Positions 3,228 to 44,095 of a DNA stretch of 64,000 bases are shown piece by piece. The stretch is from Bugula neritina (lineage: Eukaryota > Animalia > Bryozoa). The translations under genes were made by a program, and so were the position numbers. The first letter of the stretch is position 1, and the number at the start of each line of letters is the position of its first letter. The stretch is from positions 7,469,751 to 7,533,750 of the forward strand of contig OZ037773.1 of assembly GCA_964035545.1 (NCBI GenBank), in the 5' to 3' direction. Below the pieces are notes generated by a model, which did not search any database, was not told where the DNA came from, and was given only the letters and a program-made list of their open reading frames with translations.

Positions 3228-3643
3228 TTAATAATCTTCTTCAGTTTTAAAGCATGTACAGACTGAGAGAGTAAAGAGAGGCATTGAGTATCCTTTCCTC
3301 TTACAGTGTCTCCTGCACACACTTTTCTTTGTTGTGAATAGTAAAGCCTCCGCAGTCGAAGCTATATATTGAAAATAAATACTAGATATTTATCTGCAGC
3401 ATGAAAGCAAAATAGCATAATATCATATCATTCATGTGACTTTTTCGAAAAAGATAATGCAAAAATGGCAGCAATGTTAATAAAAATGCTTCAAAATGCA
3501 TTTTTTATAGTTTAATTTTATGATGTGGTACTGTGTAAACATAAACTGTATATTTTATTGTTGACATGAGAAAAACAAACTTTCTATTTACCCAATGAAA
3601 TGATGACAATGATTACAGTTACTAGTAAAGCAAGAAACTTCAT
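3228..3643 (-). CDS. Secreted CSab (defensin-like) peptide A, 4 Cys, 61 aa
   Basis: Exons 3643-3592 (MKFLALLVTVIIVIISL) and 3361-3228 (ASTAEALLFTTKKSVCRRHCKRKGYSMPLFTLSVCTCFKTEEDY*), joined by a canonical GT-AG phase-1 intron. Upstream non-coding exon donor at ~3929, TATA at ~3991-3997, CCAAT at 4037-4041. Confidence 0.85.
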
Positions 3644-3798
3644 AATGTATCTTCGGTCTACAAATATTCAAGAAAACATATTATATTTAGTCAGTTTATT
3701 GAAATGTTGCATACATGTGAATGAATTTTTATCATGTTTTGTCGACTATATTTATATATGTTTAAAAATAAGTTAACAAACAAAAATAACAAGTTAAT

Positions 3799-3817
3799 TT
3801 ATATATATATATATATA

Positions 3818-3883
<66 letters not shown>
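3799..3883. repeat. (TA)n microsatellite in intron 1 of peptide gene A
   Basis: Dinucleotide run seen directly. Confidence 0.95.
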
Positions 3884-3885
<2 letters not shown>

Positions 3886-5537
3886 TTTTTACATACTGAT
3901 TGACATTGAAAACGCATTTAGTTTCTTACCTGGCGTTAAACAGTGTTGAAGATACACGGTCTGAATAATATTAAAACACTTCCACTTATGTTATATATAT
4001 CTTTTGATTTTGATTATTTTATGCAGCTTTTAGTTGATTGGTCAATAGCTAGACTAACAAAGAGATGAAAAACAAGCATAAAAACTTATAGTGATGAGGC
4101 ATATTATGTAGATAGATACAGGACACTATTCTCTTGATTTTGTATGTAAATATATTACTTTCTACGTATGAACTGACCAAAACGTATCAATTCTTTGGAA
4201 ATTGTTATGGCAATATAATCACTTTTATTTTAAAATAATATTTAGGAAGGAATCAGTTAAATGTTGCTATTAGTCACAATGCAATAATGTTTTGTTTGTA
4301 GAGTATCTATTGTTTAGAAAAAAAGTTGTGCATGTCTTGTCACTCACATATCACAATTGATTTGAGGGTAATTATTATAAATATCAGCTAGAACAGTAAT
4401 GATTTTTACGTGCCTACAAAACTCTAGCCTGTATAAAAAGTAAAATTATCTACACATCTACGACAAAGTATGATGAAACACTCTGAATGCAGTTTTATTT
4501 CAACAATGCAACGATGCAATGCTCTGAATATCAAAGTTAAATTATTAAAGTAATAATATGATTTTCATTTGTATTGCATGATTTTAAATAGAAGTAGTAG
4601 AATAAATGATATTCATTTGTTATTGATTTAGTTTGTTTCGAAATATGTAATAGATTGATGATATCCTACCCTAGCAAAACGACAACAAAAATACAAAAGC
4701 AAGCACATGTACTTTATTTCAATTATGGTTGGAAATTTTTATTCTAAGCATAATTATGAAAGAAATAAAAAATATACAGTAAATTTTTTAGCACCTAAAA
4801 TTTTAGTGTTTAAATAAATTTTCCTTCAATCATTCTTCATATTTCATACCTAAATAAGTTAGCCAAGGCAGCTTCTTAAAGACCTCTCAAAGTGATTGCT
4901 GTTTCAGCTAATATTTATAATAACTAAACTAAAATTAGTTGTTATCAATTGACTAAATATACAAAGCTGTTTCTAAACAATACATACTTAACTAATAAAA
5001 CAATAATGACTTGTGATTAATAGTAAGAGTTAACTTCCATTTATCAATAGCTTTGTGAAGTTAGAAATGATTATATTTCCGTAATAATTGACTTTGAATG
5101 TCGTCAGTTTATACGTAATAAGTCAAAATATTTTATCAAACTTAAAATACTGCTGCCCTGTAGCTATATAGTACACCTTAACTGATTTAGATGCATGATT
5201 TTTCAGTATTCTTTAACGTCAGTCGACCTATTAACCAATCAACAGAATGCTCTGTGTAATAATTCAAAACAAAAAATACACAAAGTAGAAAATTTTCTGC
5301 TATTTATAAGTGTGTGTTTATAGTTTACAAGTTTACAGGTTTACAAGTTTTGTCTTTAATATAAAAGTCAAAACATTATAAGCATCATATCTTAAAATTC
5401 AATTAAATTTATACAAAATACAGTTTTACACATGTTCATTAATTTTTCTGCTTGTTCTACTGGTATTGTTTCATTAAAATAGTATGATCATATGGTTTTT
5501 CGAAATAGGTTCATATGTTCATAACAAATTTTAACAG

Positions 5538-5677
5538 CTACAATGGCAAAGGCTTAGAGATTCACATCAAAAGAAAGTGTGTGCAAGAGGCATTGTGATA
5601 AGACTGGGCATTCAAAACATAGCTTGTTTCTTGAATTCTAAAAATGTTTTCACACTGAAGAAGATTGTTTGACTTAA
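5538..5677 (+). pseudogene. Pseudo mature-peptide exon of the A/G (TEEDY) subfamily
   Basis: After the cag acceptor the phase-1 frame reads ATMAKA*RFTSKESVCKRHCDKTGHSKHSLFLEF*KCFHTEEDCLT*. It is colinear with gene G (18592) but has two in-frame stops, one replacing the first Cys of CxC. Confidence 0.85.
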
Positions 5678-6426
5678 AAATTGATTGCTGTAGCTTCTTG
5701 GAGATTACAAAGTTTGTATTCACTAAAATATTTTTCGACGTTATAAATGCTTCCTAAAAATAAAGCAACTAACTTATTTGAAAAACTTTTCACCTGAGTG
5801 ACATGATCACATTATACACACGCACACGCTCTTGCAATGCAATTTTTAAATGAGCTTTTGGATGTGCTTCAGTGCTTATAATCAAGTGAAAACTTAATTT
5901 CTTATTATCAGTAACATTGATGTTCAAGAATGCTGTTTATATATTATGTATATCAGTTTTTTTAATGAACCAGTTATAGTGACTCTAGTATTATTATATT
6001 ATATTTTTAGTTAATTGGAATTTACGTGCATCTTACAAAGTGCAGGGTGGGCGTTGTTTTACAACCAAGTTTAAATTTAGAGAAGATCAATAACACAATT
6101 GAGCTAAAGTTTCCAAACAATATAACAATATAAACTATTTGCATAGTGTATAGTGTAATATAGTGCACAAAATTCTTTGAAATACTTACTAATCAAACAC
6201 ATATATTGCAATCAGTTATTCCGTTTTATACCCTAAAACTCTAAATTGTCGCTATAATATATAGTATTGAATGATGATGCTAAAAATTGTTAAATGAATA
6301 ATTACTCATTTTATTACAGAAAACCTACAAGCATTACAAAATATTTTTGAAAATGTTCTAGAGGCAAAAACTTTTGAAGAAACTAGGATATTATACATTC
6401 GAAACTATCAAAAATGAATTTCAGTT

Positions 6427-6988
6427 TTAAGAAAGATATCTTATGTCTTGGTTGATACAGCGGCAACGTCCATCTGAGTATCTGTACTGAGTGTAACGCT
6501 TCTTGGTACAGTCAGAAGCGCATTTCCTTAATCCAGACCATCTGGGACAATGAGCTTTCACCACTGTAACTTTGAAAGTAATATTACTGATAATATATAA
6601 ATGCCAAACATTAGAATAAAATAATATTGTTGCTTCTGTGTTTGAGTAAATCAGCTTGATGGATATGAAGCATGTGGAATTAGTATCAAAACCCATAGAT
6701 ACTATTTTTATATGTTATCTAAGAGTTAAGCTTAAAATTTCAAGCTAATATTTATATCAGCGTAAAGTTCTATTTTATTATGATATAATATTATGTTATA
6801 TATAAAAATATATATAAGTATATAATTGCATGCAATGAGTATATTTAATAATAGCTAAAACTATCACTATTTTAATAAATATATGTAAACACAATAAATT
6901 ACTTTATGCCATTTGTATTTTTGAATGATTTTAACTCACTCAATGTGCTGGTGACCATCAAACAGATAAGGACAGGCAGGAATTTCAT
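6427..6988 (-). CDS. Secreted CSab peptide B, 5 Cys in mature region, ~63 aa
   Basis: Exons 6988-6940 (MKFLPVLICLMVTSTL) and 6569-6427 (alternative in-frame acceptor at 6563): TVVKAHCPRWSGLRKCASDCTKKRYTQYRYSDGRCRCINQDIRYLS*. Non-coding exon donor at ~7366, TATATAAA at 7440-7447. Confidence 0.85.
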
Positions 6989-9483
6989 ATTAATTTCTTT
7001 ATCTACAAACTTATATATAGTCAAAGATTATTTTAATGCTGCAGATTAAATCATGCTTTATGCACATAGCGAGAGTTGGTTATAATTTAAAAGAAAGTTA
7101 ATAGCAAATTTATAATCACCTCGAAATTTATTTTCTCGATGTTTATTTTATAGTCAACTTAATGAAGAAGAAAAGCTTTTATTATGCATATATGGCTACA
7201 CTAGATTCCATGTTTTACCAAGTTTTAACTAAGCCATTATTTTAAAAAACACATCCAATAGGCATTCGATCTATTTTGAATCTTCAAACTAGATACTATA
7301 ACTTCGTAAAGATACAAAATAATAAAATAAACTGAATAAAAAACATGATTCTATAACCGGACTTACCTGTATGTATTTTTTACAGTTGCTAGTAATGAGG
7401 GTATAAATGCTAGTGCAGTGGAGTAGACACAATTGAAGCTTTATATAGTCTTTTCAAAGATATATGTTGTCAGTTGGCTAATTCCTTTCAGGTGTGTCAT
7501 GAGGTGTAGACATTCAATGTCCTAATAAAACCTTATATTAAATTAGAACAGCTGTGTGCTTTAATATAATGCTTTTTTCATTGTTTTAATACTGCATGTA
7601 TATTGAATATGTATAAAAATGCAATATTGAATCACTTTAAAATTTCGGCTCATTTTGTGTCAACAGTATTTATTTAAAAATAATCAAAATTTGTGTACAC
7701 ACTCAAAACGAATACCAATAGAAATGTCATAATTTTAACAAATAAGTTTGCCTGTTTTTGAATCATGTAGCTACAGTAATTTAAAGAAGCCTTTTTTATA
7801 CTATGCCCATAAAAAAACATTAGCCTACTTCCCAGTTTATAATCGTTTTGGAGATGTGTTTTATAAGGGCATTGTCGACCAAATCTCATATATATAGGGA
7901 TTAGTCACACAACACAATATTTTATATAGATCTCTTGCAATACCTTTGCCTATCAACTTATAGGTGATATGGATAATCTAGAAAAATAAACATGAATCTT
8001 GGATTATATGACTAGAGTAGACTAAATTTACTTTAATCACAATTTTCTGTATAGCTAGGCTACTATAAAAACATTACCCGGCCTACAACAAAATTTTATC
8101 ATAAAACAGATAATGTATTATTACATTGATATAGAAATTCAGTTAACTTGAGTTGAAATAACGGACTATATTGCAAGTATTGTTTACGTCGTTGTGCAAT
8201 AAATAAGCGATAACCATGACCTATAGTTGGGTTTTTTAAATATAAATTAACAAACAAGCTGCAAAATTATTCCCATGTTTTTAGAAGTTTTAATGTTGTA
8301 AAAGCACTTGGTAGTCTGTTTAGAAGAGAGAATGCCGATAAGAGGGAAAGCGACAAATTTTTACCAACTATTCTATATCGCAAACTGAATTATATGTGTA
8401 TTTGAAAACAAAAACCAATGCAAAAATAATTCTCTTAGAATCAAACAGCTGAAAGGGTTAAAAATACTCCATTATGTTCTTTTATAATAAATGACAAAAG
8501 CATTTCAGTCAACATTCTATAACATCCAAATTAATAACTCAAACAAAATAAATGTTTTATACAACATTTTCTTTAATTTTTCAAAATAATATATTATCGT
8601 CACATGTGTCAAATGAAGATCGGTTACAAAAATATCTTACAATTTGAATGCTTTATCATATTATAGCTTATATTATAAACTATATAATGTAATAGTTTTT
8701 CTAGGGCCAACATCTTCACAATCACAACAACTGTGCAGTATATATAGTTTGCAAATTATTCTATTGAATATACAAGCTTTTCAGGTTTTTCAGACATAGC
8801 AGTTTATCAAAAAAAAAATAATTCAATGCATGATAAATATTACTTAGCTACATGTTTTGTGGAGTTTATGATTGAGTCAACAATTAAAATTAAATGTGTT
8901 TTTAGATGTGTACTAATTCAGGGCTTATAATAAGTGAAAACTTAATTTTTATTATCAGCAACATTGATGTTCAAGAATGCTGTTTATATATTAGATTAGT
9001 TTTTTAAGGAACCAGTTATAGTGAATCTAGTATTAATTATTATATATTTTTAGTTGACTAGAATTTGTATGCATTTTACCAAGTGCAGGGTGGGCATTGT
9101 TTTACAATCAAGTTTAAATTTAGAAAAGATCTTAATAACACAATTTAGCTAAAATTTCCAAACTATCAAACAAACGATTTGAACATTTTGTTTGATAGAG
9201 ACATTTGCGAGTGTATATAGTGCACAAAATTCTTTGAAATATTAATTTTAAAAATAAAGCGGATAATTATATATCAATTAGGCATTTGGTTTACCCTAAC
9301 TCAAAATTGTCACTATATAGTATTGAATAAGGATGCTGAAAATTGGTAAATGAATAATTACTCATTTTATTTTAGAAAACATACAAGCATTACAAAATAG
9401 TTTTGAAAATTTTCTAGAGGCGAAAAACTTTTGAAGACACTATAATGTTATACATTCAAAACTATGAAGAATAGATTCCAGTT

Positions 9484-10142
9484 TTAAGAATTAAGATGTG
9501 CTACGTCAAGGCTCCTGCAGCGGCATCGCCCGTCTAAGTATCTGTACTGAGCATGGCGTTTTGTAATGGCGCATTTAGCAGCGCATTTCTTTAATCTAGA
9601 CCAGCTGAAACAAGGAGCTTTCACCACTGTAGCTTTGAAAGTATAAATATTACTGATCATAATTGACAAACATTAAAAATTAGAGAGATGTTGTTGCTTC
9701 TGTGTTTGAGTAAATCAGTTAGATGGATATGAAGTATGAGCAATTAGTATCAAAACACAGAAACTATTTTTTGTATATTATCTATGTAACAGTTAAGCTT
9801 AAAGTTTCAAGCTAATATTTATATCACCGTGAAATTCTATTATGTTAAAATACAATATTATGTTATATATAATATATATATATAAATAATTGCATGCAAT
9901 GAGTAAATTAATATAATTATAGTTGAAAAAAGATCACTATATTTTCATATATTTTCATAATTTCATAAAAGTTATTTCCTGCCATCTGTAGTAGGAAAGA
10001 ATAAGGCAGTTGTGCAAGAGGGTTGGGTTGTCCTGCATGTGATGGTGGCATTGCATACATATAATTGTAAATGTAGTTTTTATAGCTCACCCAATGTACT
10101 GCATGTGACCATCAAACAGATAAAGACAGCCAGAAATTTCAT
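9484..10142 (-). CDS. Secreted CSab peptide C, 5 Cys in mature region, ~66 aa
   Basis: Exons 10142-10091 (MKFLAVFICLMVTCSTL) and 9632-9484 (ATVVKAPCFSWSRLKKCAAKCAITKRHAQYRYLDGRCRCRSLDVAHLNS*). Non-coding exon donor at ~10492, TATATAAA at 10564-10571. Confidence 0.85.
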
Positions 10143-10687
10143 AACAACTTCCATTATCTACAAACTTACAGTTAAAGATTATTTTAATGCAGATTCATGC
10201 TGACACATAGAAAGAGTTAGTTTCAAAAATTATTATCGTCATTTAAAATGAAGTCATTTGCAAATTAATTTATCTTCTTGATGTATGATTTATAGTTAAC
10301 TTATTGACTAAAAAATCTTTTATACTGCATATGACTGCTACTCATTGCTATGATTTACAAAGTTTCAACTAACCCATTCTATTTAAACCACAAATGATAG
10401 GCATACTATGTTGAATTTTAAAGGTAATTTTTTAACTTCATAACGGTATAAAACAAATGAAAGTAAAAACATGTTTCCAGAACCGGACTTACCTGTAGAT
10501 ATCTTTTACAGTTGCCGGTAGTGAGGGTATAAATGCTAGTGCAGTGAAATTAACACTGAGACCTTTATATATAGATGTATGTTATCAGTTGGCTAATTAT
10601 TTAAAGGTGTGTCACGAGTTATGAGCATACAATGTTCTAATAAAAAATCATTAAATAAGAGCAGCTGTGCCATTTAATATAATGCTA

Positions 10688-10790
10688 CTTCCATTGTGGT
10701 GTAATGGCTAGTGCACCTGCTTGCAAGCCGGAGGTCTTTGGTTTGAAAATTGGTGGGAGAAGAAGTTTTATATAGTGTTCTTCCCTGGTT
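10688..10790 (+). mobile_element. tRNA-derived SINE fragment, family 2
   Basis: A-box-like TGGTGTAATGG, TTGCAAG anticodon-like loop and degenerate GGTTTGAA B box. A related copy lies on the minus strand at ~20950-21055. It sits at the edge of the B/C duplication. Confidence 0.55.
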
Positions 10791-11284
10791 ACAAAATTTA
10801 GCACTATGCAAAGTTGATCGTAGACTACAAGTAGCTAAACTTGTAATATAAATCACACAACCTAAAGCTACTTTTACTCCATATGTGAGGTCTGAAAATG
10901 CAGTTGCTTCAAAAAAGTTGTACGTGGGTAGCCAATCAGATCTAATGTTCCAAGTTGTTGTTAATCATTGCATGAATGATTTATAAATTTTACCATTCAT
11001 ACATAAACCTTCAATTTGGTTAAATTGTTAAAATTATAGAATGATACTTATTCTCAATGTAAATAAACTAGGGAATGAAAAGATTGAGAGAAATCATGTC
11101 GTAGTAAAGTATTTTTATTTTCAGCTATGACAATTGATCTTATATAGAGCTCATAGAAATTTAATCTTGCCATTTAATAAGTTTAAGTATGTATTGTTTG
11201 GGGAACTAAATTATATAGTGGCTTAGTCAGTAACTACTTACCCTTTATTCATGCTTACCGTGTTGTACGCCGTAACAGCAAAGA

Positions 11285-11618
11285 TCAGCCATTTTTACAA
11301 ATTTTACAAATTTTACAAATTAAAAAACTCCACGCCGCCTTCACTGAAGCTATTAAACAATGACTAGCTAAAAACTTTATATAACTTATTGTGAACAAAA
11401 GGATATTGCAATAGATGCTGTTAATAATTATCATACTAAGAAATTAACTTCTTAACGATACAGTTAGAACTTGGATTTGATGCTTATATTTTATTGAAAT
11501 TAAATTAAATGTGTAAATATAAAGTATATTTTATAATTAAAATGATATATAATATTTTCTACTTACCTAATGAAGTTATGGAAACAATAGCTGTTACCAA
11601 CAAAGCAAGAAACTTCCT
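11285..11618 (-). pseudogene. Pseudogene of the A/G subfamily: start codon lost and mature exon disrupted
   Basis: Signal exon ~11618-11567 reads (AGG in place of ATG)KFLALLVTAIVSITSL G/gtaag. Acceptor at 11350 gives ASVKA, then unrelated sequence (WSFLICKICKICKNG*). Intron similarity to gene G. Confidence 0.75.
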
Positions 11619-12813
11619 ATTGACTTTGTGGTCTACAGGCATTTAGTGGAGTAAATTATTTGCTGAAAGCTTGCTGAAATATTGTACAGAAATAAGTTCA
11701 TTACTAATTTTTTGAAGCAAATTAAAAAAATATACCGTATATATGCAAAACAATTACAGCTGAATCCATGGTATACTCAAAAACATTTTTTTAGTAGTTC
11801 AAACTGTAGTGACTTAAGCAAAGGTGCAAAAAGAAATTTAGTTTCTTACTCACACTACAGCTATTATATATATACAGTATATATATACAGTATATATATA
11901 TATATATATATATATTATATGGTTCATATTACTTAATTTAGTACACAATGTACATCTCTAGTTTTTTGATTGTTTTTTCACAGTTTGGCTGCTAATGTAT
12001 ATAGTTTTTTAATTAAACTGATAAAATATCAACAAATACAACCGAACTAGCAAGTTTTTTTTCTCATTATTTTTGATTGTCTGTGTTTTATTCTAATTGT
12101 TTAGTAACATTGGGTGGGTAGTGAGATAAACAAGCGTAATATGATATTACTGAACTAAATTATATGCCTTTGAACAGTCAGAGTAAATGCTGAAAAATGC
12201 ACAATAGGAATAAAAGCTTTTGAGACTTGTTTGATGACTTTAACTTTTTTATGACATTTTAGAAAGCATAAAACTAATTTAACAAAAAAAATAAAAATCT
12301 TTTCCCAAAACGAGATACAACAAGAAAAGACTTTTTTATCAAAATGTATTGTTTTTTGCTACTCTCTCAACAAATTTTTTATTTAGTAATACTTTAATGC
12401 CTGTTGATGAATTTTAGATGCATTCCTTTTTATTTACTCTATTATTATTGGCAGCTTGAAATTATCTCACAATTATAATTTCTTCAAATCATGAGGGCCA
12501 GAATTGCATGATAATAAAACTTAGCATAATCACAAAACGGTGAATATATTTCAAAACTAAATTTAGCTATAATTTATGAAAAAACATACTAAAGCCATCA
12601 TTAAATAGCTTTATTTATAAGCATAAAGATAGACTAAAGAATAAGGCGCTTGTGTTCATATTGCATTGAATTTTATTGTGGAAAGCATGAAAACTACACA
12701 GAAAATAATCAACATCATAACTAATAATTTAAATTTACTTAAATGACTAAAAATTTTGTTAATTATAGCAGTGAGAAAGTCATGTTTAGGACAAGGTTAG
12801 ACAGTTTAGAACT

Positions 12814-13187
12814 TTAGTGGTGCTTCTTGTAACCCTTCTTGTGGCATTTGCATACTTTACAGTTCTGCTTGTTGGAATTCTTGTCTCTGCAAAACTTTTT
12901 GCAGCCGTCCTTCTTATCAGGACATTTATCATGAGCAGCTAGAAAATACAATTCAGCCTCATAACTTTGACAGCGTATTATTAATAAGAATCGCAGGATG
13001 ATTAATTGTGTAACCAGTTTATATATATAAGCTCTAAGTTTGAGGCTATAAATAAGAACTATGGATCACACATTTCCTTATAATTTGAATAAAAAAGTCT
13101 TTTAATCATGTATTTCAGAAGAATTTTCAACTTACCCAATGCGCTGATGATCAACATGGCAAAGATAAGTATAGCAAGAACCTTCAT
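12814..13187 (-). CDS. Secreted Lys-rich CSab defensin-like peptide E, 6 Cys, 58 aa
   Basis: Exons 13187-13136 (MKVLAILIFAMLIISAL) and 12938-12814 (AAHDKCPDKKDGCKKFCRDKNSNKQNCKVCKCHKKGYKKHH*). Non-coding exon donor at ~13448. Confidence 0.88.
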
Positions 13188-13522
13188 ACTGAACTTGTTT
13201 CTAAAAAGTAACAGTTGAATATTATAAATATGTGTCACTTCTAAATATGACATTTATATTTACTTAAAAATATTTTTCTAGTTAATTTTAAAAATCACAC
13301 CTGTTTTAAAATTATTCTTACGCAGTTTGTTTTCTCTGTACAATTGCATGCCATTACATAGTTATTTGCTGCTACTATTATACAAAATATCATATATATA
13401 TTTGTAAGAAAAAGAATTAAATTAGCTTCAATGTTATAAGTAGCTTACCTATTGTTTTGTTCACTGTGGCAATCAGTTGTCAGAAAATGAACACAATTGC
13501 TGTAAGAGTGTAAGCTGGTGCA

Positions 13523-13588
13523 TTTATATACAATTTTCAATCCAATTCTGTGCCAATGCAAACTATTGAGCAGCGACAATTTGATTGG
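13523..13588 (-). promoter_or_regulatory. TATA box (TATATAAA 13523-13530) and CCAAT box (13584-13588) of peptide gene E
   Basis: Both motifs lie just upstream of the non-coding first exon, with spacing similar to genes A and F. Confidence 0.55.
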
Positions 13589-14524
13589 CTAACAACTGCC
13601 AACCACAAAACACAATTGCTTCAAGTTCTATTTATAACTTTAGTATATTCTATTTATAAACAGTTTTACTCTTTAATTTAGTGCTTTGATTGTGACTGAG
13701 TAGACTAATTGTCACCAAATAATTATTATTGTCAGATTTTCTCAGTTCTGCAAATAAAAGCTGACTCTAAAAAAACGTAGCACAAGAAATGTGCATATGA
13801 AAGCTGTATTATGCGTATAGTTGCATTGTGACTGGCTGAAACATGCATGTAACGATGCAAATTAGTTTTCAGTGGTGCATTCGGTATAATTATGATATAT
13901 TTCAGGCTTTACTGAGCATGTTCTCTGAATGCGATAAAGAAAGTTTTATTACATAATTTTTGTATTAATATAAAAAGTTGGCAAACAAATCACATTTATA
14001 TAAATCGATTTTTGATATTTGTACATCTCTGCAAATTATTTCTATACTTTGCAGTATAAATTGTGATTAAAATCCAAAATAAATAAATTTAAAAAATATA
14101 AATTATAGTGGTTCTGACATTCAACATTACAATTTTTTTCAGATCCAGTCTGTAATTAGTTCACTTGTCAAAATATGTTTAGTATTAGATTTTTGCAATA
14201 ATTTCAGATGCTGATTATCACAAAACTTTAAGTTCTTTTGAAATTCGCCAAACAAATATATAGACATTGCTATATTAACAATTTGCTAACTTAGTTGGAA
14301 ATATTAATTGATAGTTTATCTTTAGTTACAAAATAATAAACCCATATGTGTCGTTTTGAAAAAAAGATTAGAACACTTTTTTACCAATCACAATATAATG
14401 GATTATAAACTTATGATTAGGCACTAAACCCATTATTTTTCAATACAGATTAACTAAATATTTATTTTAGTAAATGATGTTGTAGTAAAACTCCATGATA
14501 TGCTAGATAAACAGTATAGTCTAG

Positions 14525-14670
14525 AAAAAGCAGCCTCATTTACAAAGAGTTACTGATGAGTGCAACAGCATGCAGTATGCAGTTAAGGTAAGTAAAAAAG
14601 ACAGCTTTCAAATTTGGTTCTTATGCTTGCAGGTGCATCTACGGGTAACAAAGCACCCTATGACAGGTGT
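14525..14670 (+). pseudogene. Decayed CSab mature-exon relic (ACRC subfamily)
   Basis: Reads ...SATACSMQLR*VKKTAFKFGSYACRCIYG*. Nucleotide match TCT.ATGCTTGCAGGTGC...GGTAACAA...ACCCTA to 20475-20530 (minus). Confidence 0.5.
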
Positions 14671-15691
14671 CGCAAGTCTTCTATAAAGGTAGATATGATC
14701 ATCAACAGATGCATATTTTTGTGGATTAGGATTAAAAACAGGTGACTTAATGTCATGTTTATCTTCCCATGAATGATATTTTCAGCTTCGTAGAAATTTT
14801 GTTAAGTTGTTTTAATGTAGTTATAGCTATAAATATGCAAAATATCAATTCTTGTTCAAAAACCAAAAAAAGGCAAACTTGTGAAGTCAAGAAACCATGG
14901 CTAAATTAAATATGAAAATATATATTTTATTGTACTACTTCTTTTTATAATCAGTATACATGGAGAAACAGTCTCATTAATTTGCAATGAATAAAGGACT
15001 TAGATACGCCACCCTATTGTTAAATGTTGATATAAATCACAAAATGGCCATCAACAAATGCTTGCATGATAATTCTGCACCAATTAATTTACCATTGCAA
15101 TCATTTTGATTCGGTTGGTTATAACATCCACTTATTATATATTGCGGAACAATATTTTTTATACTACTACTTTATTTAAAACCAGTATATATATATATAT
15201 AATATGAGGACAACCCCATTTCCTTGCAATTATAAAGGAACTTAGATTTACATTTTCATTGTTTAAATTTGGTATACAATACAAACTGATGATCGATAAA
15301 ATGTATATGCTTATAACTTGTAATCAGTAATTTATTTAGATAAATTTTGAGCCATATTATAATAATGAGGAAATGAAGATTGTATATCCGTGTCATTTCC
15401 ACACATTTTATAGAGGTTAGTATTTAACCATATCAGCTGCGACTATGCATATGGCTGATCTACCCTCAACTGACTTAAAACATTTACCTGGATATTTAAA
15501 AAATGACAAGAGCCTTGTAACAATTACTTTAAACACTGCAGCAAAAACTGAAAATCCACCTTCAGTAGGTCTAATATACCATCAGCTTTTATTAAAGTAC
15601 TAATGAAAACAAGTATAACGCAATTTTTTTATGACAGGAAAACTTTTTAAGGACAATAGAATTATAACTTCTTACTTTTGGCATTTATTAG

Positions 15692-15829
15692 CCAATTAAC
15701 AGGACACTTCAAAATACTAAAGTCTATAAAATTTGAGTAAGAATAGTATATAAAGGTTCTAGTTTCTTTTCTACTTCATGGCAATATAACTCCAGCTTCT
15801 AATAACTTCAATAAACACTCGCAGGTAAG
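15692..15829 (+). promoter_or_regulatory. CCAAT (15692), TATA (15747-15754) and non-coding exon 1 of peptide gene F
   Basis: TATATAAA followed about 70 bp later by a CAG/gtaag donor; same layout as other family members. Confidence 0.55.
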
Positions 15830-16371
15830 AACTGTTAGGTAAATGTGTTATTTCAATTCAATACATATTATATACATGTAGGTAATCACGCAATTGAAGA
15901 TTTAATTAAACATTTAACATATTATTTTGACACTTGATAACTGGTTTTCAATAATAATTAGACCACAAACTTTATAGATTTAGAAAAAAAAACTATTGTG
16001 TATTGGAAGGGGTTTTCATCAACAAAATTATCATGTCTAAGAAACAAACCTAACTTTTCTCAAATTTAATTAATTTCATATATTAGAAAGCTGGCGCTTA
16101 AAATTAAATTTAAAAGCTGTGTAATAAACTAAGAGACTTTTTTATCAAAAATATTCATGCATATTGAAATTACCAGCTGTAAAGCTACTAATATTTAAAG
16201 TAATATTAGCCTAAGCAGTTTTGTTGAAATATTTAGGAATGCATGTAATTATATGTTTTCATAAGCATATATTATTATTATCTAATATATATTATTATAT
16301 AATATATATTATTATATAATATAAAAATATTATTATGTTCTGTTATAACTGACAACTCTTATGTGTGCGTG

Positions 16372-16444
16372 AGTATAAATTTGTGTATCTAAAATATTTA
16401 AGTATAAATTTGTGTATCTAAAATATTTAAGTATAAATTTGTAG
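16372..16444. repeat. 29-bp tandem repeat (~2.5 copies) ending at the splice acceptor of gene F
   Basis: AGTATAAATTTGTGTATCTAAAATATTTA x2, then AGTATAAATTTGTAG. Confidence 0.85.
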
Positions 16445-16457
16445 AAACAAATCCAGT

Positions 16458-16916
16458 ATGAAGGTTGTTGTGGCGCTTATGTTTGTTATGATGGTCACCA
16501 GCACAATGGGTAAGTTGGAAATAATTCAGAAACACATATTATTTTAATAATAAAATCAAATTTTGTATTCATTATGCATCTTTTTAAATATTATAGAAAC
16601 AATACAATTATATTAGCAATGAATATTAAGTTTTAAATGTAATAATTTACAAAAATAATTTTGTATATAAGACTCTATCTTACTTGCATGTGTACACTAT
16701 TATGCCATTGTAACACAATTTAGCTGCATAGAAATTTATTTATTAAGTATATTATCATATACTATATTTTTAGCTTTAGCATTTAGGTATAATTCTGGAT
16801 GCCCTCAGACAGTCTCGAAGTGCAAGCAGTTTTGTATAAACAGAAACTTTCCTGAGTACAAATGTCAAAACAGATGGTGCAAATGTGACAAAAATCGGAA
16901 TATAATAGCAACATAA
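16458..16916 (+). CDS. Secreted CSab defensin/scorpion-toxin-like peptide F, 6 Cys, 64 aa
   Basis: Exons 16458-16509 (MKVVVALMFVMMVTSTM) and 16774-16916 (ALAFRYNSGCPQTVSKCKQFCINRNFPEYKCQNRWCKCDKNRNIIAT*). Canonical C-x6-C-x3-C-x9-C-x4-C-x-C array; AATAAA at ~17064. Confidence 0.9.
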
Positions 16917-17439
16917 GTTCTTAAATGTTGACATTTAACCTGAGAATAAGTCTGCTCCCCATTCCACATCATTTCAATAATTTCATCGAATTTATACAGT
17001 TGAGATACTTATGAGATTACTTATGCTGTAATTTTTTATCATGCAATTCTTTTGTTTGTCCACAATAAAAGCAGGAAACTATATAGTTGTCATTGCGCTA
17101 ATTTATTTGTTTGAACTTTTTTGCAAAAAAATACTGTCTGATTGTGCCTAAAAGCTTTTTGGTCTAAAAGTGGCTGTATTAATATATGAGACTGAGAAGT
17201 GCACCTCACAGTAAATGTTATTCACTTCCATTTGATAGAAAGTGAGAGCAATTTACTATTTTGTGAATAACATGTTTGTCATTGCATTAAGAATTTCTGT
17301 GAATAAACTATAAAGTAGCATAACTCCAATATTATTTTCAGTACACCAGAATAAGAAATATGACTAAAGTTATCAAATCAAAATTGAATACTAGTGAATA
17401 AAACAACCAACAAGAAATATATAATATATATAGACCCAA

Positions 17440-18374
17440 GGACTAAACTATATTCGAAATGTTTTTGAACATAAAAATGGTTATACCCTAAATATGTATA
17501 ATAGAGAAAACTATTAACAATATTGGTGACGGACTACTCAGTGAAAAAGACAACAGGAAACACATTTTACTTCAACTGCCTTATAAAGGAGTAACAGGAG
17601 AAAACCTAATCTGCTCCCTCAATAAATTAATTACAGACTCTTTTCCAAATGAACTCAATGCCCGGATTATATTTAAAAGAACCCCCTTAAGTTCACATTT
17701 TAATCTCAAAGATAAAACCAATAAAGAACACATACACAACCTAGTCTACAAAATAACCTGCCCTGAAGCTATACCTGTCAACAAACATATGTAGGCGAAA
17801 CTGGACGTCGCCTATCACACAGGATACATGAACATTGCCATGACATCAATTCCAAAATTTATCAACACATCTCCACCACTAAACACGGAAACGTATCAAT
17901 AGACAATGTAACAGTTCTAAATCATTCATTTAAAGGAATCCACCATCGAAAAGTAGCCGAAGCTCTCTACATTAAACAAATAAAACCGCAACTTAATAAA
18001 CAAAATTACTCCATACCACTAAAACTATACCAATAAGCTCCACACTACACAACTCTTACATAGTTTCACTAATCCTTGCTATTTTTTTATATTTGGATAT
18101 CTATTTTTTGTCAATTCTAATTTTTTTTATGCAAAAATCAGTATAATTTTTGACATGCGTAATATATAAATTCAGATTATCTCCCTCAGTTTCAATAATT
18201 TATAATAACTGCCACTCTCTATTCTTTGTGTCAAGCTGCATAGTGTCTAAAGTAACGTAATAATTTTTGAATTTCATTCATTGCTACTCTGAAGATGGGT
18301 ACAACGTGGTACCCGAAATATCAGTATAATTACTTTGCCTAATAAAGTAATAATCAACAATGTTTCTCGTATAC

Positions 18375-18375
<1 letters not shown>
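17440..18375 (+). mobile_element. 5'-truncated Penelope-like retroelement (GIY-YIG endonuclease end plus 3' tail)
   Basis: Translates LQLPYKG...LSSHFNLKDK...NLVYKITCP / frameshift / CQQTYVGETGRRLSHRIHEH...IYQH...RKVAEALYIKQIKPQLNKQ...* (stop at 18034-18036). These are motifs typical of PLE GIY-YIG domains. The tail contains a hammerhead motif and ends at a TA microsatellite. Confidence 0.88.
18285..18326 (+). ncRNA. Minimal type I hammerhead ribozyme (PLE-associated)
   Basis: TACT-CTGAAGA-T-GGGTAC-AACGTG-GTACCC-GAAA-T-ATC-AGTA: stem I TACT/AGTA, CUGANGA and GAAA boxes, 6-bp stem II, loop-less palindromic stem III (ATAT) and cleavage triplet AUC. Confidence 0.8.
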
Positions 18376-18420
<45 letters not shown>

Positions 18421-18591
18421 ATATATATAATATATGCTGCTCTATAGTAATGGCACACTCTAGTTTTTTAAAACTCATGAATAAATTTATTGTCTAAGAA
18501 ACAGGTAATACATATATATTATATAATATTATTTAGGATAAACTTTGTAATGCGCAAAAATATAATTCAGCAGCATTTTTACATCAATGAG

Positions 18592-19060
18592 TCAACAATT
18601 TGTATAATAATCTTCTTCTGTTTTGAAGCATTTGCACACAGTGAGAAACAAGCTATGCTTTGAGCGCCCCATACTATCACAATGTTTCCGGCATACACTC
18701 CCAGATGTGGTGAAACGGAAGGCTTCTGCCATAGAAGCTATTAACAAAATAATGTACTGAATATATACCAACAAGATATTTCATGTCTATCCATATTGTT
18801 TCTTTGTGACAAAGAAATATTGCAAGAAATAGAAGTAGTAATAATAAACATATCTAGAAATTTATTTGATATAGGCAAAATTAAATTTTGGATTAGATTC
18901 TTATGGTTTCATTAAACAATTTATTGTCAAAATGGGACCTAGTAACATATGGGAATGTAAAAAATATTTTATTATTATTGACATAATATAAAATAGTTAT
19001 CTACTTACTCAATGATGTTATTGTGATAATGGCAGTTACAAATAAAGAAAGTAATTTCAT
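18592..19060 (-). CDS. Secreted CSab peptide G, 4 core Cys plus C-terminal Cys, 65 aa
   Basis: Exons 19060-19009 (MKLLSLFVTAIITITSL) and 18737-18592 (TSMAEAFRFTTSGSVCRKHCDSMGRSKHSLFLTVCKCFKTEEDYYTNC*). Non-coding exon donor at ~19377; paralogue of A. Confidence 0.85.
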
Positions 19061-20062
19061 CTTGAATCTGTGATCTACAAGCATTCAACTAAATAGATTA
19101 ATTTTTGAAAACGTGTTGAAATTTTGTGAACATGTGCAGAAGAAAGTTGGAACTTTGATCATTGAATATTTATATAGTCATTGCAAAATAAAGAAATAAA
19201 ACAGTATATGTATTACTATATGTAATAATTTTTTTGCTTTGTTTAATGGCCAAACAAAATTTCTATAATCATGTTAAACTTATCAAAAACCATAATTGAG
19301 CCTGCATGTAATATTAAACATTAATCATTTAAATTAACAATGTAGCCCAAGGAAAAATTATACGTTTAGTTTCTTACCTAGTTTATGTTCAGTAGTGCAT
19401 ACGAGTTGTTGTAGTAAAGATTATATACACATTGGGTATTGATAAAATAACTTCTGCGTTTAAATAGTTTTTGGTCTGAATTATTACATATGTAGCTTTC
19501 AATTGCTTGGTTAACCACTCTATAAGAATGGTAATAAAAATAATGATTATCTATATAATAAAATTTATTTAACTAACTTTTTTGCTGGTCTTCAAAATTT
19601 TATTGCCATAAAGCATTTAGTTCTCTAAACTTCAGAATTATATAATTTTATATAATGCAACAGTCACATGTCTTTGCGGAAGAAGGTTTGCACAATCCAC
19701 CAGGTGATTTACATTGTACAATAATTTTTGAATTATTCAAAGTAATATATGACCACATGTCCTAAATAAAGGTCAACTGAAAAATAAAAAATAATCTCAT
19801 AAAAATAATGCTTTATTATATGTATATAATATATTATATATTATAATATAATCATACCAGGATTAACACTATTACAATTCTTATAATGCTTATAATAATA
19901 GTGTTGCATGGAAAACACATGTTATTGCATTTTAACGTTCAGTCTCTTTTTAGAGCTGTAATACTATATGCTAACAATTAAACCTTCAAACTCTGCAATC
20001 ATTTGAAATAAATGCACATATAGCAAATCAAGATGCAAATTTTAAATTGATTATCATTATAT

Positions 20063-20155
20063 TACTTACTTTACCGACTTACTTAAACTGACTTACTTAA
20101 CTGACTTACTTAACCGACTTAACTTAATTAACATAACTTGATAACTTAACTGACT
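20063..20155. repeat. Degenerate ~13-14-bp minisatellite (GACTTACTTAA(A/C)C)
   Basis: Repeated ACTTACTTAA units seen directly. Confidence 0.7.
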
Positions 20156-20500
20156 AATTGTTAATCATTTTAGGCCCTGCGCTTTCACTAGCCTCTGCTA
20201 TGGCGCACCATTGGGCCTCATCATTACCTCCTTTGGGTGATCCCTTGTATTTTTTTTTAATTTTATGTATATATGTATATATACATTAATGAAAATAAAC
20301 AAACAAATATTGCTTTAATAAACTTTAAGCAATATATTTTACGATGTTCTGTTATATGTACTCTAAAAACATTTTTTACTTTAAACATCATATATGGTAT
20401 GTTTTTGATCTTAATCTGCAAAAGCATACAGCTGTTGATGATAATTATTATATCTACTTTCACAAAATATTTTTGACACATGTTGTAGGGTAGGTAGTTG

Positions 20501-20649
20501 TTACCTGTGGCACCTGCAAGCATTAGAACTCACTTTCAACACTGTATTTTTGCACCTATAACATTAGCTCTGTATTCCTGAGCCCGTACTTCTATTTGGT
20601 ATCACTCATTGCTCCAACGAAACACTTTCCTCAGCAAGTTGCACCGAAG
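20501..20649 (-). pseudogene. Decayed CSab mature exon (ACRC subfamily)
   Basis: The acceptor appears mutated (tatataa/CTTCG versus tatatag/CTTCG in gene A). Frame reads SVQLAEESVSLEQ*VIPNRSTGSGIQS*CYRCKNTVLKVSSNACRCHR*; paralogous to 14525-14670. Confidence 0.55.
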
Positions 20650-20949
20650 TTATATATTTCTCCCTAACATCTCAATACTAATCCAAATTTGAAACAATAT
20701 TTTAATTTTATTTAACTGAATTTTGAATTCATGCTGATTTATTGCAAATATCTCGATTATTTTTATATTTTACTTGATTGCATTTTGAGATCATGCAAAA
20801 ACTTTGTTCAAAGATTATATTTTTAAGATGATGCTTTTATAGACAATGCAGAGAGGTGAAACTTAACTTCTCACTTAAACAAAATGGAAATTCTGAATAA
20901 AACAAACCAAATTTATCAACAAAGCCTAATTTATGGTAAAAAAATTAGC

Positions 20950-21055
20950 TGAAGGGAGATTTGGGGTTCAATATAAGAACTGGGATTCAAACCGAGACCT
21001 CTGGCTAATTGCAAGCATGCAAAGGTGCGCTTATGGCCATAACACGACAGGGACT
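20950..21055 (-). mobile_element. tRNA-derived SINE fragment, family 2
   Basis: Reverse complement GTCCCTGTCGTGTTATGG...GCTTGCAA...GAGGTCTCGGTTTGAATCCC, similar to 10688-10790. Confidence 0.55.
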
Positions 21056-22325
21056 ACTGCATGGCTAAACGCAACGTACTATAACTAAGCAAAAAATATG
21101 CATATCAATCACTGTTTAACTCGAGTATTTTTACTCTGATCACATAAAACAAAGTTTTTTAGAAGCTAAAGTTTTCAAAAAGTGACAAATTCAGACGCTC
21201 ACCAAAGTATTACTTACATAAATATAGCATAGGTCAAACGCTATTTCTAAATTTATTCAACACGTTTACAATATATTGAAATGATTTCTATTGCAAGTTC
21301 ATTTACTGGTTTGACTTGAATATATAGCAATAAACACTCTTTTTTCTTACACAGTTGCATTGTCTTCATCATGCTTTATTTAAGGGCATTGTCCACCACA
21401 TGTCTCCAATGTGAAGATTAGAAATCAATAGTTTAAAGGCAATATATCATAGGTTATCTAGCAACATACTGAAATCAAACCTAGGTATGCATCATATAAT
21501 CACAAGTTAGGTTCCCTGGCTATGTAATATCTTGCATTATTTATAGCTTTATAAGTTTTTTAAACTTTAGGAAACTGATAAAAGCACTATTTGATAGGTC
21601 GATTACCATTGGGATTAGTCATTCATCTCTATTATTAAAAACCATAGAGGTGATGTACCTTTATTCTTGCTATATGTCACTATAATATCTGTAAATTGCT
21701 AACATTTAATGAAATATGACATCTAATAAATTTTTATATGTATGCAATGCAACATAATGGAATCCAATATTTTGGTTGAAAAGCATTTGACATGACGTAT
21801 TTACGCATTATCATTTGATTTAAGTTTATCGTAGCTTCCATCAATATATTGTTGGATATTCAGTTAAATGGAACAAACTGAATAAAAATCATGAGGAGTT
21901 GGTGTTAGGTTAATATAACAATTTCCTGATGTATAGGTAGCTGTTAGTCAATAAACTTAAAGTCACTAGTTATAGGCCTATATAAGTGATGGATGTGTAT
22001 CAATTGACCAAAACCACAAAGCAAGTAAAAATTTACAAGTATTTCTACTTATTTATACATAAAATACTAATACTAATTACACAAATACTGATTAGGTTAT
22101 ATAGTTTAATAGGTTTAGCAATGCTGAATAGCTTTTATAACAATTTATGTTACATATAAAGCATATAAATGTATATTAAATGAGTGTAAAATCATTTAAA
22201 ATAACAATTAGTCAGTGCTCAGGAATGTGACTAATTTATATACTATTTGTTGTCTTTCAAATTTAACAGCCTACCGTCACGAGAGAATCTACAATCTGTG
22301 TGCAATATAAAGAAACAAATTGAAG

Positions 22326-22813
22326 ATGAACATTGTGGCGTTACTGTTAATTGCCCTGGCTTCTTTCTGTACATTGGGTAAGTTAAATGCCTTATTTATA
22401 TGTTTCGCTGATCATTAAATGTTTTTTATATTCAGGTTTTTAACAAGTTTTGTATTTAATAGTATTAAAATATCTAAGAAAAATAGCATAGCAGAAAACT
22501 TACACTTTTTTAGCTGAGTTATGCATAAAAAAAAGTTATTATAGAAGTAATATTATCAATTGAACACTTGTATTTGCAATATTGTATGTTTACTAACTAT
22601 TAAATATTTGAATAAATTTAAACATGCAATAGTATATGTATGTATATATTGCATTGATGTTGCTGAAATAATTTCACTGTTTTGTACAATTTTCAAACAG
22701 CATCGGCTGCAACTGGCTTCCAACTAAAATGCATAGCAAAGTGCGCAAAGAAAAAGCGTTATGGCTATTCTATGTATGAAAGTATCTGTGTATGTGTTCC
22801 ACTTCCAGGATGA
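22326..22813 (+). CDS. Secreted CSab peptide H, 4 Cys, 54 aa, C-terminal Gly
   Basis: Exons 22326-22377 (MNIVALLLIALASFCTL) and 22701-22813 (ASAATGFQLKCIAKCAKKKRYGYSMYESICVCVPLPG*); GT-AG phase-1 intron. Confidence 0.85.

Positions 22814-23894: not shown

Positions 23895-24426
<532 letters not shown>

Positions 24427-24730: not shown

Positions 24731-44095
<19,365 letters not shown>

Follow-up and report, generated by a model that had tools for sequence, protein, structure and literature searches.

A cysteine-rich peptide gene cluster in the bryozoan Bugula neritina is probably a mosaic of older lineages and not a ladder of disulfide loss

We find that a cluster of genes for small secreted peptides with six, five and four cysteines, located on chromosome 9 of Bugula neritina (Bryozoa), is best read as a mosaic of three older lineages in which the C1-C4 bridge was altered at least twice independently, and not as a ladder from six to five to four cysteines; we give this reading a probability of about 0.7. 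Judging from the trees and the chromosomal distribution of the loci, the four-cysteine state is an old, dispersed clade that was not made in this cluster, and genes B and C look like a separate, later event, grouping with E and F by the DNA of their signal exons. Two of the three cysteine states are maintained by selection. We also consider it likely that the genes form a tandem birth-and-death cluster within a B. neritina family of small secreted cationic peptides of the cysteine-stabilised alpha/beta (CS-alpha/beta) type.

The window, i.e., the whole 64-kb stretch of DNA that was analysed, contains between positions 3228 and 22813 (a span of approximately 20 kb) nine loci that belong to a single family. 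Seven of them (A, B, C, E, F, G and H) are intact genes of two exons, D is degenerate, and the remaining one is a relic of an exon 2. The gene plan consists of a 52-nt signal exon (49 nt in B), a phase-1 intron, and a mature exon with the invariant motif CxxxC...CxC. The 52-nt exon encodes most of the signal peptide, and exon 2 encodes the signal end or pro region together with the mature peptide, which has 32-45 residues in the family; all family members are cationic, with net charges of +2 to +10. In the window genes, the signal exons are homologous and lie 197-458 nt upstream of each mature exon, with a GT...AG phase-1 intron between, and a search of the 64 kb with an nhmmer profile built on the signal exon recovers exactly eight copies (E from 3e-10 to 6e-17); thus, the pattern is not a product of chance. 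Three proteins predicted independently in a draft genome (P0001, P0003 and P0006) have the same splice sites as the window genes.

The first gene, A (3228..3643, minus strand; four cysteines), consists of a signal exon at 3592-3643, an intron at 3362-3591, and a mature exon at 3228-3361, including the stop codon. It is followed by the relic (5531..5669, plus strand), which is exon 2 of an A/G-type gene without a signal exon; it carries two in-frame stop codons, one of which sits at the third core cysteine position. The five-cysteine gene B (6427..6988, minus strand) has its signal exon at 6940-6988 and its likeliest mature exon at 6427-6569; the acceptors at 6563 and 6554 are in-phase alternatives. 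Gene C (9484..10142, minus strand; five cysteines) is the tandem duplicate of B, with a signal exon at 10091-10142, a mature exon at 9484-9632, and alternative acceptors at 9626 and 9617. Locus D (11285..11642, minus strand) retains an A/G-type signal exon (11567-11642) in which the usual start codon of the family is gone and the frame opens at an upstream in-frame ATG, while its exon 2 (11285-11349) is shortened to a 9-nt-repeat peptide with three cysteines. The six-cysteine gene E (12814..13187, minus strand) has a mature exon at 12814-12938 and a signal exon at 13136-13187, and an orthologue of the latter is found at the end of L072. The other six-cysteine gene, F (16458..16916, plus strand), consists of exons 16458-16509 and 16774-16916, with an alternative acceptor at 16780; its exon 2 is covered by a contig from run X2, and it should be noted that runs X2 and X3 represent DNA from a divergent B. 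neritina lineage, not RNA. Gene G (18592..19060, minus strand; signal exon 19009-19060, mature exon 18592-18737) has four core cysteines and a C-terminal fifth, and its orthologue is the predicted protein P0001, with an identical splice. Finally, gene H (22326..22813, plus strand; signal exon 22326-22377, mature exon 22701-22813) encodes a four-cysteine peptide with a short N-terminus and a Pro-Gly end.

The four core cysteines are invariant in all 38 aligned sequences, with CxxxC and CxC in the expected order and spacing, and 14 residues separate C3 from C5 in 24 of 33 sequences. Translation of F gives C-x6-C-x3-C-x9-C-x4-C-x-C, exactly as a sequence-only reading of this DNA had described it, and the description of A, G and H was equally accurate: they have C-x3-C-x14-C-x-C, no cysteine in the C1 position, and F, L or M in the C4 position, which is the tenth loop residue. 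The last residue of G is a cysteine that is kept in the orthologue from the second lineage; therefore, G is a five-cysteine peptide. Gene E has C4-x2-C5, i.e., 12 residues between C3 and C5. For B and C, which had been said to keep C1 and to have tyrosine at C4, the tyrosine is indeed present, whereas the identity of the N-terminal cysteine with C1 depends on the alignment. This cysteine is separated from C2 by 8 residues in B and C, whereas E and F have 6. Its reading as C1 is favoured by a Cys-Pro dipeptide, but the DNA alignment sets the Trp codon of B and C against the C1 codon. B has 14 residues between C3 and C5, and C has 15, so that the tyrosine of C is the eleventh loop residue. B and C are recent tandem duplicates with tyrosine at C4 and an N-terminal cysteine that would be unpaired. 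The bridge absent from the reduced-cysteine forms is the predicted C1-C4 bridge, as had been proposed, and the expected hydrophobic residue is seen at the C4 position of these members; most four-cysteine members also have an aromatic residue (F, W or Y) in the C1 position. The claimed homology of the four-, five- and six-cysteine peptides is borne out by the common signal exon, the phase and position of the intron, the pro-region motifs, and the 14-residue spacing.

We place the family in the CS-alpha/beta (cis-defensin or scorpion-toxin-like) superfamily, an assignment resting on the shared gene structure, the matches of the family profile, and an AlphaFold model of A. Searched against 177,635 PDB sequences, the family profile matches cobatoxin-1 (E = 2.4e-4), an Anopheles defensin variant (2.6e-3) and nasonin-1 (3.3e-3); among 1.84 billion representative sequences it matches multi-domain proteins (E = 6.5e-10, 2.1e-5 and 3.8e-5), and these multi-defensin proteins pass the Pfam Defensin and Toxin_2 thresholds. 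Every language-model neighbour comes from the CS-alpha/beta clan. No member of the family reaches a Pfam gathering score, the best scores (threshold in brackets) being 15.9 (20.4) for Defensin_2 (PF01097), 13.8 (25.1) for Toxin_2 (PF00451), 16.3 (25.1) for Gamma-thionin (PF00304), and 15.2 (27) for Defensin (PF24552). That A keeps the alpha/beta fold is supported by the model of its 38-residue mature part (pLDDT 85.7), which is built on an alignment including six-cysteine paralogues and has a strand-helix-strand-strand order, with an N-terminal strand, a helix at 7-17, and strands at 21-25 and 28-32. The top Foldseek match of this model is cobatoxin (TM 0.64/0.73, rmsd 1.6 A over 31 columns), and the other best matches include BmBKTx1, insect defensins and nasonin-1M; for so short a chain the scores of the fold searches do not reach significance (Foldseek E above 0.5, Z no higher than 4.2), and PAN/apple and WSC modules score as high as defensins. 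The AlphaFold model of B has a helix and a hairpin (pLDDT 77.2).

In this fold, the helix would hold the invariant CxxxC and the last strand the invariant CxC, and the two core bridges would, by analogy with the superfamily, connect C2 with C5 and C3 with C6. A third bridge, C1-C4, would link the N-terminal segment to the middle strand; it would be carried by E, F, an array of approximately 20 copies on the same chromosome, and a pair of genes on chromosome 4, and be lacking in the four-cysteine group. Since the latter has aromatic residues at C1 and hydrophobic residues at C4, packing of these side chains probably stands in for the bridge. With respect to function, we infer that the secreted peptides most likely serve in host defence, as antimicrobials. 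The six-cysteine forms, which keep Lys or Arg just before C4, may act on ion channels. This basic residue is present in F, in the array and in the genes of chromosome 4, and absent in E and in all four-cysteine members; in the alpha-KTx potassium-channel blockers, a pore-plugging Lys precedes C4, with an aromatic residue nearby.

Across the B. neritina genome, we detected approximately 40 exons of the family, including the six-cysteine array. The six-cysteine genes named above constitute one clade. The four-cysteine group is more diverse and is scattered over six chromosomes, where it has at least 18 loci: in the window it includes A, G, D, the relic and H, and at least 15 further loci lie on five other chromosomes. 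No relatives of B and C were found elsewhere in the B. neritina genome. In the protein tree, the six-cysteine genes form one split (support 97/95, and 85/80 after removal of the C1 and C4 columns), and the placement of B and C is unresolved (p-AU 0.42). In the tree of signal-exon DNA, the six-cysteine genes together with B and C stand opposite all four-cysteine genes (82/75), with B and C nested in the group {F, E, B, C} (84/83 and 88/73); the key branches (82/75 and 84/83) do not have strong support, and the alternative with B and C in the four-cysteine group is not rejected by the signal-exon DNA (p-AU 0.12). Two state changes suffice for the whole family. All trees are unrooted.

We calculated dN/dS relative to orthologues from the second, divergent B. 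neritina lineage. Purifying selection acts on F (0.17, p = 2e-4), G (0.25, p = 6e-4) and H (0.14, p = 1e-3); a four-cysteine gene on chromosome 6 has a value of 0.10 (p = 6e-4), and the four pooled four-cysteine orthologue pairs give p = 9e-8. All cysteines are conserved between the lineages, including the fifth cysteine of G. The comparison of B with C gives dN/dS of 0.52, which is indistinguishable from neutrality (p = 0.12).

The sequence-only reading regarded the cluster as preserving intermediates of disulfide loss or gain. Taken as a stepwise ladder, six-cysteine genes (E, F) would have given rise to five-cysteine genes (B, C) and these to four-cysteine genes (A, G, H), by local duplication and by loss of C4 followed by loss of C1. 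It is true that all three states occur inside 20 kb, that the same bridge is affected each time, that only the C4 partner is missing in B and C, and that the Tyr, Phe and Trp codons found at the C1 and C4 positions are one step from Cys codons. However, the four-cysteine clade is large and scattered over six chromosomes, A and G have their closest paralogues on chromosome 3, outside the cluster (A pairs with a chromosome-3 gene, 95/81), and the signal-exon tree nests B and C with E and F instead of placing them between the six- and four-cysteine groups. In addition, the C1 column of B and C has Arg or Ser, not the aromatic residue of the four-cysteine type. We therefore regard such a local ladder as improbable. 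The reversed polarity, in which the two-disulfide form is ancestral, the clade of E, F and the array gained C1-C4, and B and C carry a half-made bridge or a new unrelated cysteine, is a possible but doubtful alternative. It agrees with the larger number, divergence and dispersal of the four-cysteine lineages relative to the single six-cysteine clade, with the alignment of the B/C Trp codon opposite the C1 codon, and with published work in which the two-disulfide class of this fold is argued to be ancient; furthermore, H and two four-cysteine loci at 3.1-3.3 Mb of chromosome 9 fall on the six-cysteine side of the protein tree, which would make the four-cysteine state paraphyletic, although the support is weak (82/77, and 45/78 without the C1 and C4 columns). 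Conversely, a gain requires two coordinated cysteine substitutions, and the six-cysteine spacing C3-x9-C4-x4-C5 is exactly that of cobatoxin- and nasonin-type peptides, which are all three-bridged and are the best outside profile matches. The unrooted trees show neither direction, and no outgroup was found that would root the choice between loss and gain. We lean toward loss at the deep split, at about 60:40, since the C1 and C4 positions of the six-cysteine members coincide exactly with those of the arthropod short-chain members.

Two further explanations concern parts of the family. B and C could be decaying or non-functional copies, with the odd cysteine count a symptom of relaxed constraint, and their dN/dS, which cannot be told from 1, the great length of their branch (approximately 1.9 changes per column), the lack of relatives in the genome and of any predicted orthologue found for either gene, the presence of two clearly degenerate loci in the same cluster, and the less confident model of B would all fit with this. 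Nevertheless, both genes retain an open frame, a start codon, a GT...AG intron, the four core cysteines, and the same extra cysteine and tyrosine, despite a divergence of about 20% at the amino-acid level and 39% at synonymous sites. A fifth cysteine also occurs in G, in a chromosome-3 locus and in P0008, and that of G is conserved under purifying selection, so that odd cysteine counts are tolerated in this family. Decay of B and C is unlikely, but it deserves serious weight. It has also to be considered that the four-cysteine peptides might be free-standing helix-hairpin cores of WSC or PAN/apple modules, which have a similar CxxxC...CxC, and not of defensin type. Sub-threshold WSC (PF01822) matches were found in 6 of 38 members, the best of which scores 25.2 bits (E = 2e-5; the cut-off is 27.8) and spans positions 25-55 of the 82 in the profile. 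The family profile also matches the WSC-repeat protein P0010 (E = 2.7e-4), and in superposition PAN/apple and Kremen WSC modules fit the model of A as well as defensins do (Z 3.0-4.2; TM 0.73 for a PAN domain in the Atlas). These WSC matches are below threshold and cover under half of the domain, however, and the strongest outside profile matches are to true defensin or toxin domains. Moreover, the signal exon, intron phase and pro region of the four-cysteine genes are common to the six-cysteine genes, which have the spacing of short scorpion toxins and defensins; we consider a WSC or PAN/apple origin very improbable. The mosaic of older lineages remains our preferred reading.

Among known systems, those that match best, both in the profile search of the PDB and in structure, are the short-chain potassium-channel toxins of scorpions (alpha-KTx, e.g., cobatoxin-1 and BmBKTx1; Toxin_2) and the short n-loop defensins (nasonin, termicin and Centruroides defensin-1), whose C...CxxxC-x9-C-x4-CxC framework is that of the six-cysteine Bugula members. 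Both groups are small and cationic, the phase-1 intron at the end of the signal peptide is as reported for nasonins, and most six-cysteine Bugula members have a basic residue before C4. The differences are that the host is a bryozoan and not an arthropod, that most members of the Bugula family are without the C1-C4 bridge, and that Pfam thresholds are not reached. WSC and PAN/apple modules resemble the Bugula family in a Gly-Tyr motif and in a helix-hairpin core that carries CxxxC...CxC, but they are domains of approximately 80 residues and eight cysteines within large proteins, and the Bugula match covers only the core, below the curated cut-off; no Bugula member has a full-length WSC domain (approximately 80 residues, eight cysteines, above the gathering score). 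AdDLP is a bacterial two-disulfide defensin-like peptide of the same general fold; compared by description only, it differs in its bacterial origin and in being without an intron-split secretory precursor. The view of the sequence-only reading that two-disulfide peptides of this kind are uncommon in animals is dated: such a class was described from centipede toxins and is reported to be widespread (Dash 2019, as cited in PMC12284004, PMC7232367). The SLPTX15 peptides of centipede venom (SsTx, Sm2) have the same four-cysteine CxxxC...CxC, in which two bridges tie the helix to the last strand and C1-C4 is absent. Judged by sequence and prediction, A, H and a minimum of 16 further loci share the features of this class, i.e., the two core bridges only and a retained alpha/beta fold, and neither SsTx nor Sm2 is among the 18 PDB sequences matched by the family profile at E up to 10. 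In comparison with SLPTX15, the Bugula loop is shorter (14 residues), and the Bugula genes of the two-disulfide form can be shown to be paralogues of three-disulfide genes, with one gene structure in one genome.

Six-frame translation of window positions 3000-23000 yielded seven open frames on both strands with the core CxxxC...CxC (cysteines C2, C3 and C5, C6), each with a short ATG-initiated exon encoding a hydrophobic leader 197-458 nt upstream. This signal exon ends after 52 nt (49 in B) at a GTAAGT- or GTGAGT-type donor, so the intron is in phase 1 in every gene; the splice sites that we chose are those of the AUGUSTUS models P0001, P0003 and P0006 of a draft B. neritina genome. A nucleotide profile of the signal exon found exactly eight copies in the 64-kb window (E 3e-10 to 6e-17), i.e., those of loci A-H, including the degenerate D, which retains an A/G-type signal exon, has lost the family's usual start codon and has an exon 2 shortened by a 9-nt repeat. 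The ninth locus, at 5531-5669 (+), is a relic that consists of exon 2 only and contains two stops. Translation of the loci confirmed the cysteine patterns that the sequence-only reading had given for F, A, G, H and B, and the description of the peptides is amended as follows: G has a fifth cysteine as its last residue; the C3-C5 spacing of C is 15 residues rather than 14; the N-terminal cysteine of B and C lies eight residues ahead of C2, compared to six in E and F; and only two residues separate C4 from C5 in E.

The segment 17360-18560, between F and G, is a high-copy repeat with no aligned sequence in the draft lineage; in each of the three sequencing runs, contig depth over it reaches thousands to hundreds of thousands, compared to about 60 elsewhere. 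Positions 25000-44000 and 47000-62000 take in a large gene that adjoins the cluster, with exons of the PAN/apple-like and thrombospondin type-1 kinds, and past this gene a minus-strand series of near-identical thrombospondin type-1 exons of a single repeat each. Compound microsatellites at 23820-24510 (TA/TATG-type, ~700 nt) and 33720-34180 (TG/CA-type, ~400 nt) yield spurious long open frames that are Cys-rich or Tyr-Ile.

The family extends far beyond the window, which lies on chromosome 9. The published chromosome-level assembly of B. neritina comprises 216.00 Mb in nine chromosomes, with the longest scaffold of 35.64 Mb and an N50 of 24.8 Mb (PMC11480708). Searched with a mature-exon profile, the genome to which the window belongs yielded about 40 matches with E below 1e-3. 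About 20 near-identical 6-Cys copies, spaced as in F and with a Gly-Lys end, form an array at 4.42-4.58 Mb of chromosome 9 (G000:C9:4421000-4578000, both strands; loci L002-L008, L027-L047, L052, L053 and L056); diverged 6-Cys copies lie at its edges, and a further 6-Cys pair is found on chromosome 4. The four-Cys loci number at least 18, on chromosomes 1, 2, 3, 6 and 9. The signal exon and the phase-1 intron are common to nearly all of these loci, and because this exon-intron plan is shared despite a peptide identity of 15-30%, we consider the homology of the ~40 paralogues to be established and that of the three cysteine states, which the sequence-only reading presupposed, to be supported.

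Among 1.84 billion protein representatives, the sole peptide-sized relatives were predicted proteins of the draft B. neritina genome (GCA_010799875.2; PMC7576161), and none at the level of a peptide gene came from outside this species. Neither F and the array peptide nor B's long open frame gave a match in a word-indexed protein search; the length windows used for the first two excluded the predicted orthologues of 81-89 residues, and this result says little on novelty. Between the draft and the window, aligned non-coding DNA differs by ~18-24% and introns by 11-23%, so that the draft stands for a divergent lineage within the species complex, useful for measuring constraint. It should be added that the divergence of the two public assemblies named Bugula neritina is far above the within-species expectation. 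This fits B. neritina being a known cryptic species complex. The draft contig over the cluster, L072, carries at 11704-11805 (+) an extra four-Cys exon-2 fragment, which lies between the G and F orthologues, has microsatellite flanks and lacks a signal exon; it has no counterpart in the window, and thus the content of the cluster differs between the lineages.

Using orthologous pairs from the window genome and the draft lineage, we calculated dN/dS, with significance given by Fisher p; the draft contig ends inside E, short of A, B and C, and within the cluster the comparison covers F, G and H. The ratio was 0.17 for the 6-Cys gene F (p 2e-4), 0.25 for the 4+1-Cys gene G (p 6e-4), 0.14 for the 4-Cys gene H (p 1e-3) and 0.10 for a 4-Cys gene on chromosome 6 (p 6e-4); the pooled value for four 4-Cys orthologous pairs was p 9e-8. 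Every cysteine is kept between the lineages, including the terminal one of G. For B and C, a paralogue pair within the window, dN/dS was 0.52, which is not significantly below 1. A search of sequencing runs turned up no RNA run. Of the three runs aligned to window 16760-22759, X1 proved to be the assembly's own DNA, whereas X2 and X3 were DNA of the divergent lineage. The X2 contig over exon 2 of F has 13 differences; of the eight listed, five are synonymous and the other three are replacements that recur in the draft orthologue, which assigns X2 to the lineage that the draft represents. Because X2 and X3 share the substitutions of the draft orthologues, they are not independent of the draft, and they do not bear on expression or splicing.

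No family member reached a Pfam gathering score; the sub-threshold matches were to Defensin_2, Toxin_2, Gamma-thionin, the long-chain scorpion toxin domain and, unexpectedly, WSC. The family profile matched cobatoxin-1 (E 2.4e-4), an Anopheles defensin variant and nasonin-1 among PDB sequences, and among the 1.84 billion representatives it matched multi-domain proteins that score above the Pfam Defensin and Toxin_2 thresholds. Language-model neighbours, all below 0.9 and leads only, were termicin, drosomycin-like, nematode antibacterial factor and scorpion toxin clusters. The AlphaFold2 model of mature A, built from a 38-sequence alignment, has a pLDDT of 85.7 and comprises a short N-terminal strand, a helix (7-17) and a hairpin (21-32); that of B is weaker (pLDDT 77.2), with helix and hairpin. 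Foldseek ranked cobatoxin, BmBKTx1, insect defensins, tamapin, charybdotoxin-type toxins, plant defensins and nasonin-1M at the top for the A model, with TM 0.55-0.78 and rmsd 1.3-1.8 A, at E-values that are not significant at such length. With an exhaustive aligner and the ESM Atlas, PAN/apple and WSC cores ranked level with defensins for the same model. The four-Cys loci L051, L058, L059-L061 and L070 match the WSC core just under the Pfam threshold, and the family profile also matched P0010, a WSC-repeat protein. This likeness of four-Cys members to WSC and PAN may reflect a common structural motif or distant kinship. On the evidence taken together, we place the family in the cysteine-stabilised alpha/beta superfamily and infer its disulfide connectivity.

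The C1-C4 bridge had been suggested to be replaced by a hydrophobic residue, and the alignment supports this and extends it, as both partners are replaced by bulky hydrophobics. The C1 column holds Trp, Phe or Tyr in 14 of 19 four-Cys rows, the Trp codon always being TGG among the tabulated sequences, and the C4 column of the four-Cys genes holds mostly Leu, Phe, Met, Val or Tyr. In the A model, Phe at position 3 lies in the N-terminal strand and Phe at position 24 in the middle strand. B and C have Arg or Ser in the C1 column, with the extra cysteine two residues more N-terminal. This cysteine in B is followed by Pro, like C1 in every 6-Cys gene, which favours its identity with C1; in the DNA alignment, it is the neighbouring Trp codon of B and C that pairs with the C1 codon of E and F, and this argues for a new cysteine. 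An odd fifth cysteine occurs in B, C, G, a chromosome-3 locus and P0008, and one might speculate that it makes intermolecular bridges.

A single split of the protein tree holds the nine 6-Cys genes (97/95; 85/80 without the C1 and C4 columns). B and C group together on a very long branch, whose joining to the 6-Cys group has an AU p of 0.42; A groups with one chromosome-3 gene and G with another, so that A and G are not paired. Introns of distant paralogues are saturated (Jukes-Cantor distance 0.45-0.74), which restricts an intron tree to the signal exon and the sequence directly beside it. The corresponding DNA tree leaves out the mature peptide and is based on the signal exon with 60 nt of flank on its 5' side and the first 60 nt of the intron that follows. 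All 16 four-Cys genes, among them D, stand apart in it from B, C and the 6-Cys genes (82/75), and B and C are placed beside E inside {F, E, B, C} (88/73 and 84/83); a grouping of B and C with the four-Cys genes is not rejected (p-AU 0.12). In agreement with this tree, pairwise BLAST of exon-1 regions gave mutual matches among B, C, E and F, and among A, D and G. The closest relatives of H lie on chromosome 9 at 3.1-3.3 Mb. The window thus holds three lineages: {E, F, B, C}, {A, D, G, relic} and H. Only two changes of cysteine state are needed across the family. The suggestion that the cluster preserves stepwise intermediates finds no support in these results.

Signal-exon and intron DNA had been expected to polarise the change; the signal exon with 60-nt flanks separates the groups and does not root them, the trees being unrooted and an outgroup not found. 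We favour loss of the C1-C4 bridge over its gain, with a probability of roughly 0.6, because C1 and C4 coincide exactly with the arthropod short-chain positions. Gain of the bridge, with an older two-disulfide state, is a serious rival to this: the 4-Cys genes are more diverse and more dispersed than the 6-Cys genes, and two-disulfide peptides of the cysteine-stabilised alpha/beta fold have been argued to be ancient (Dash 2019, as cited in PMC12284004). On the reading of loss, we suggest, quite tentatively, that the two- and three-disulfide paralogues of this one animal genome, with their common gene structure, may reflect at least two losses of the bridge. One would be ancient, with an aromatic-hydrophobic pair in place of the bridge and a radiation under purifying selection after it; the other would be recent, in B and C, with a free cysteine left behind. 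If true, three-disulfide ancestors can give rise to the two-disulfide class more than once, this class does not have to be an ancient lineage of its own, and Bugula offers a natural series for testing the contribution of the third bridge.

Few scaffolds of host-defence peptides and toxins are as widespread as the cysteine-stabilised alpha/beta fold, and how disulfide number changes, and whether two-disulfide forms are ancestral, is an open question of the field. The present family is unusually clean material, with ~40 paralogues in one genome, both disulfide states under selection and one pair that may be caught mid-change; it provides a natural test bed, of moderate interest, for how disulfides are lost or gained. 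A literature search found no paper on such a peptide family in Bryozoa, in a species whose chemistry and symbiosis are otherwise well studied; it appears to be the first noted in this phylum and is a new lineage-specific family within a known superfamily. In practical terms it offers a modest yield, namely peptides that are candidates for antimicrobial or channel activity and a set of test cases for disulfide engineering, all by genomic inference.

All members are cationic (net charge +2 to +10) and predicted to be secreted, and the 20-copy array suggests a demand for high output. Several peptides have Gly or Gly-Lys just ahead of the stop (window 22808-22813; L006:1609-1614; L048), which is the usual signal for C-terminal amidation. 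Host defence seems on balance the most probable role. The 6-Cys forms possibly have channel-directed activity, by analogy; most of them carry a basic residue ahead of C4, like the pore-blocking scorpion toxins.
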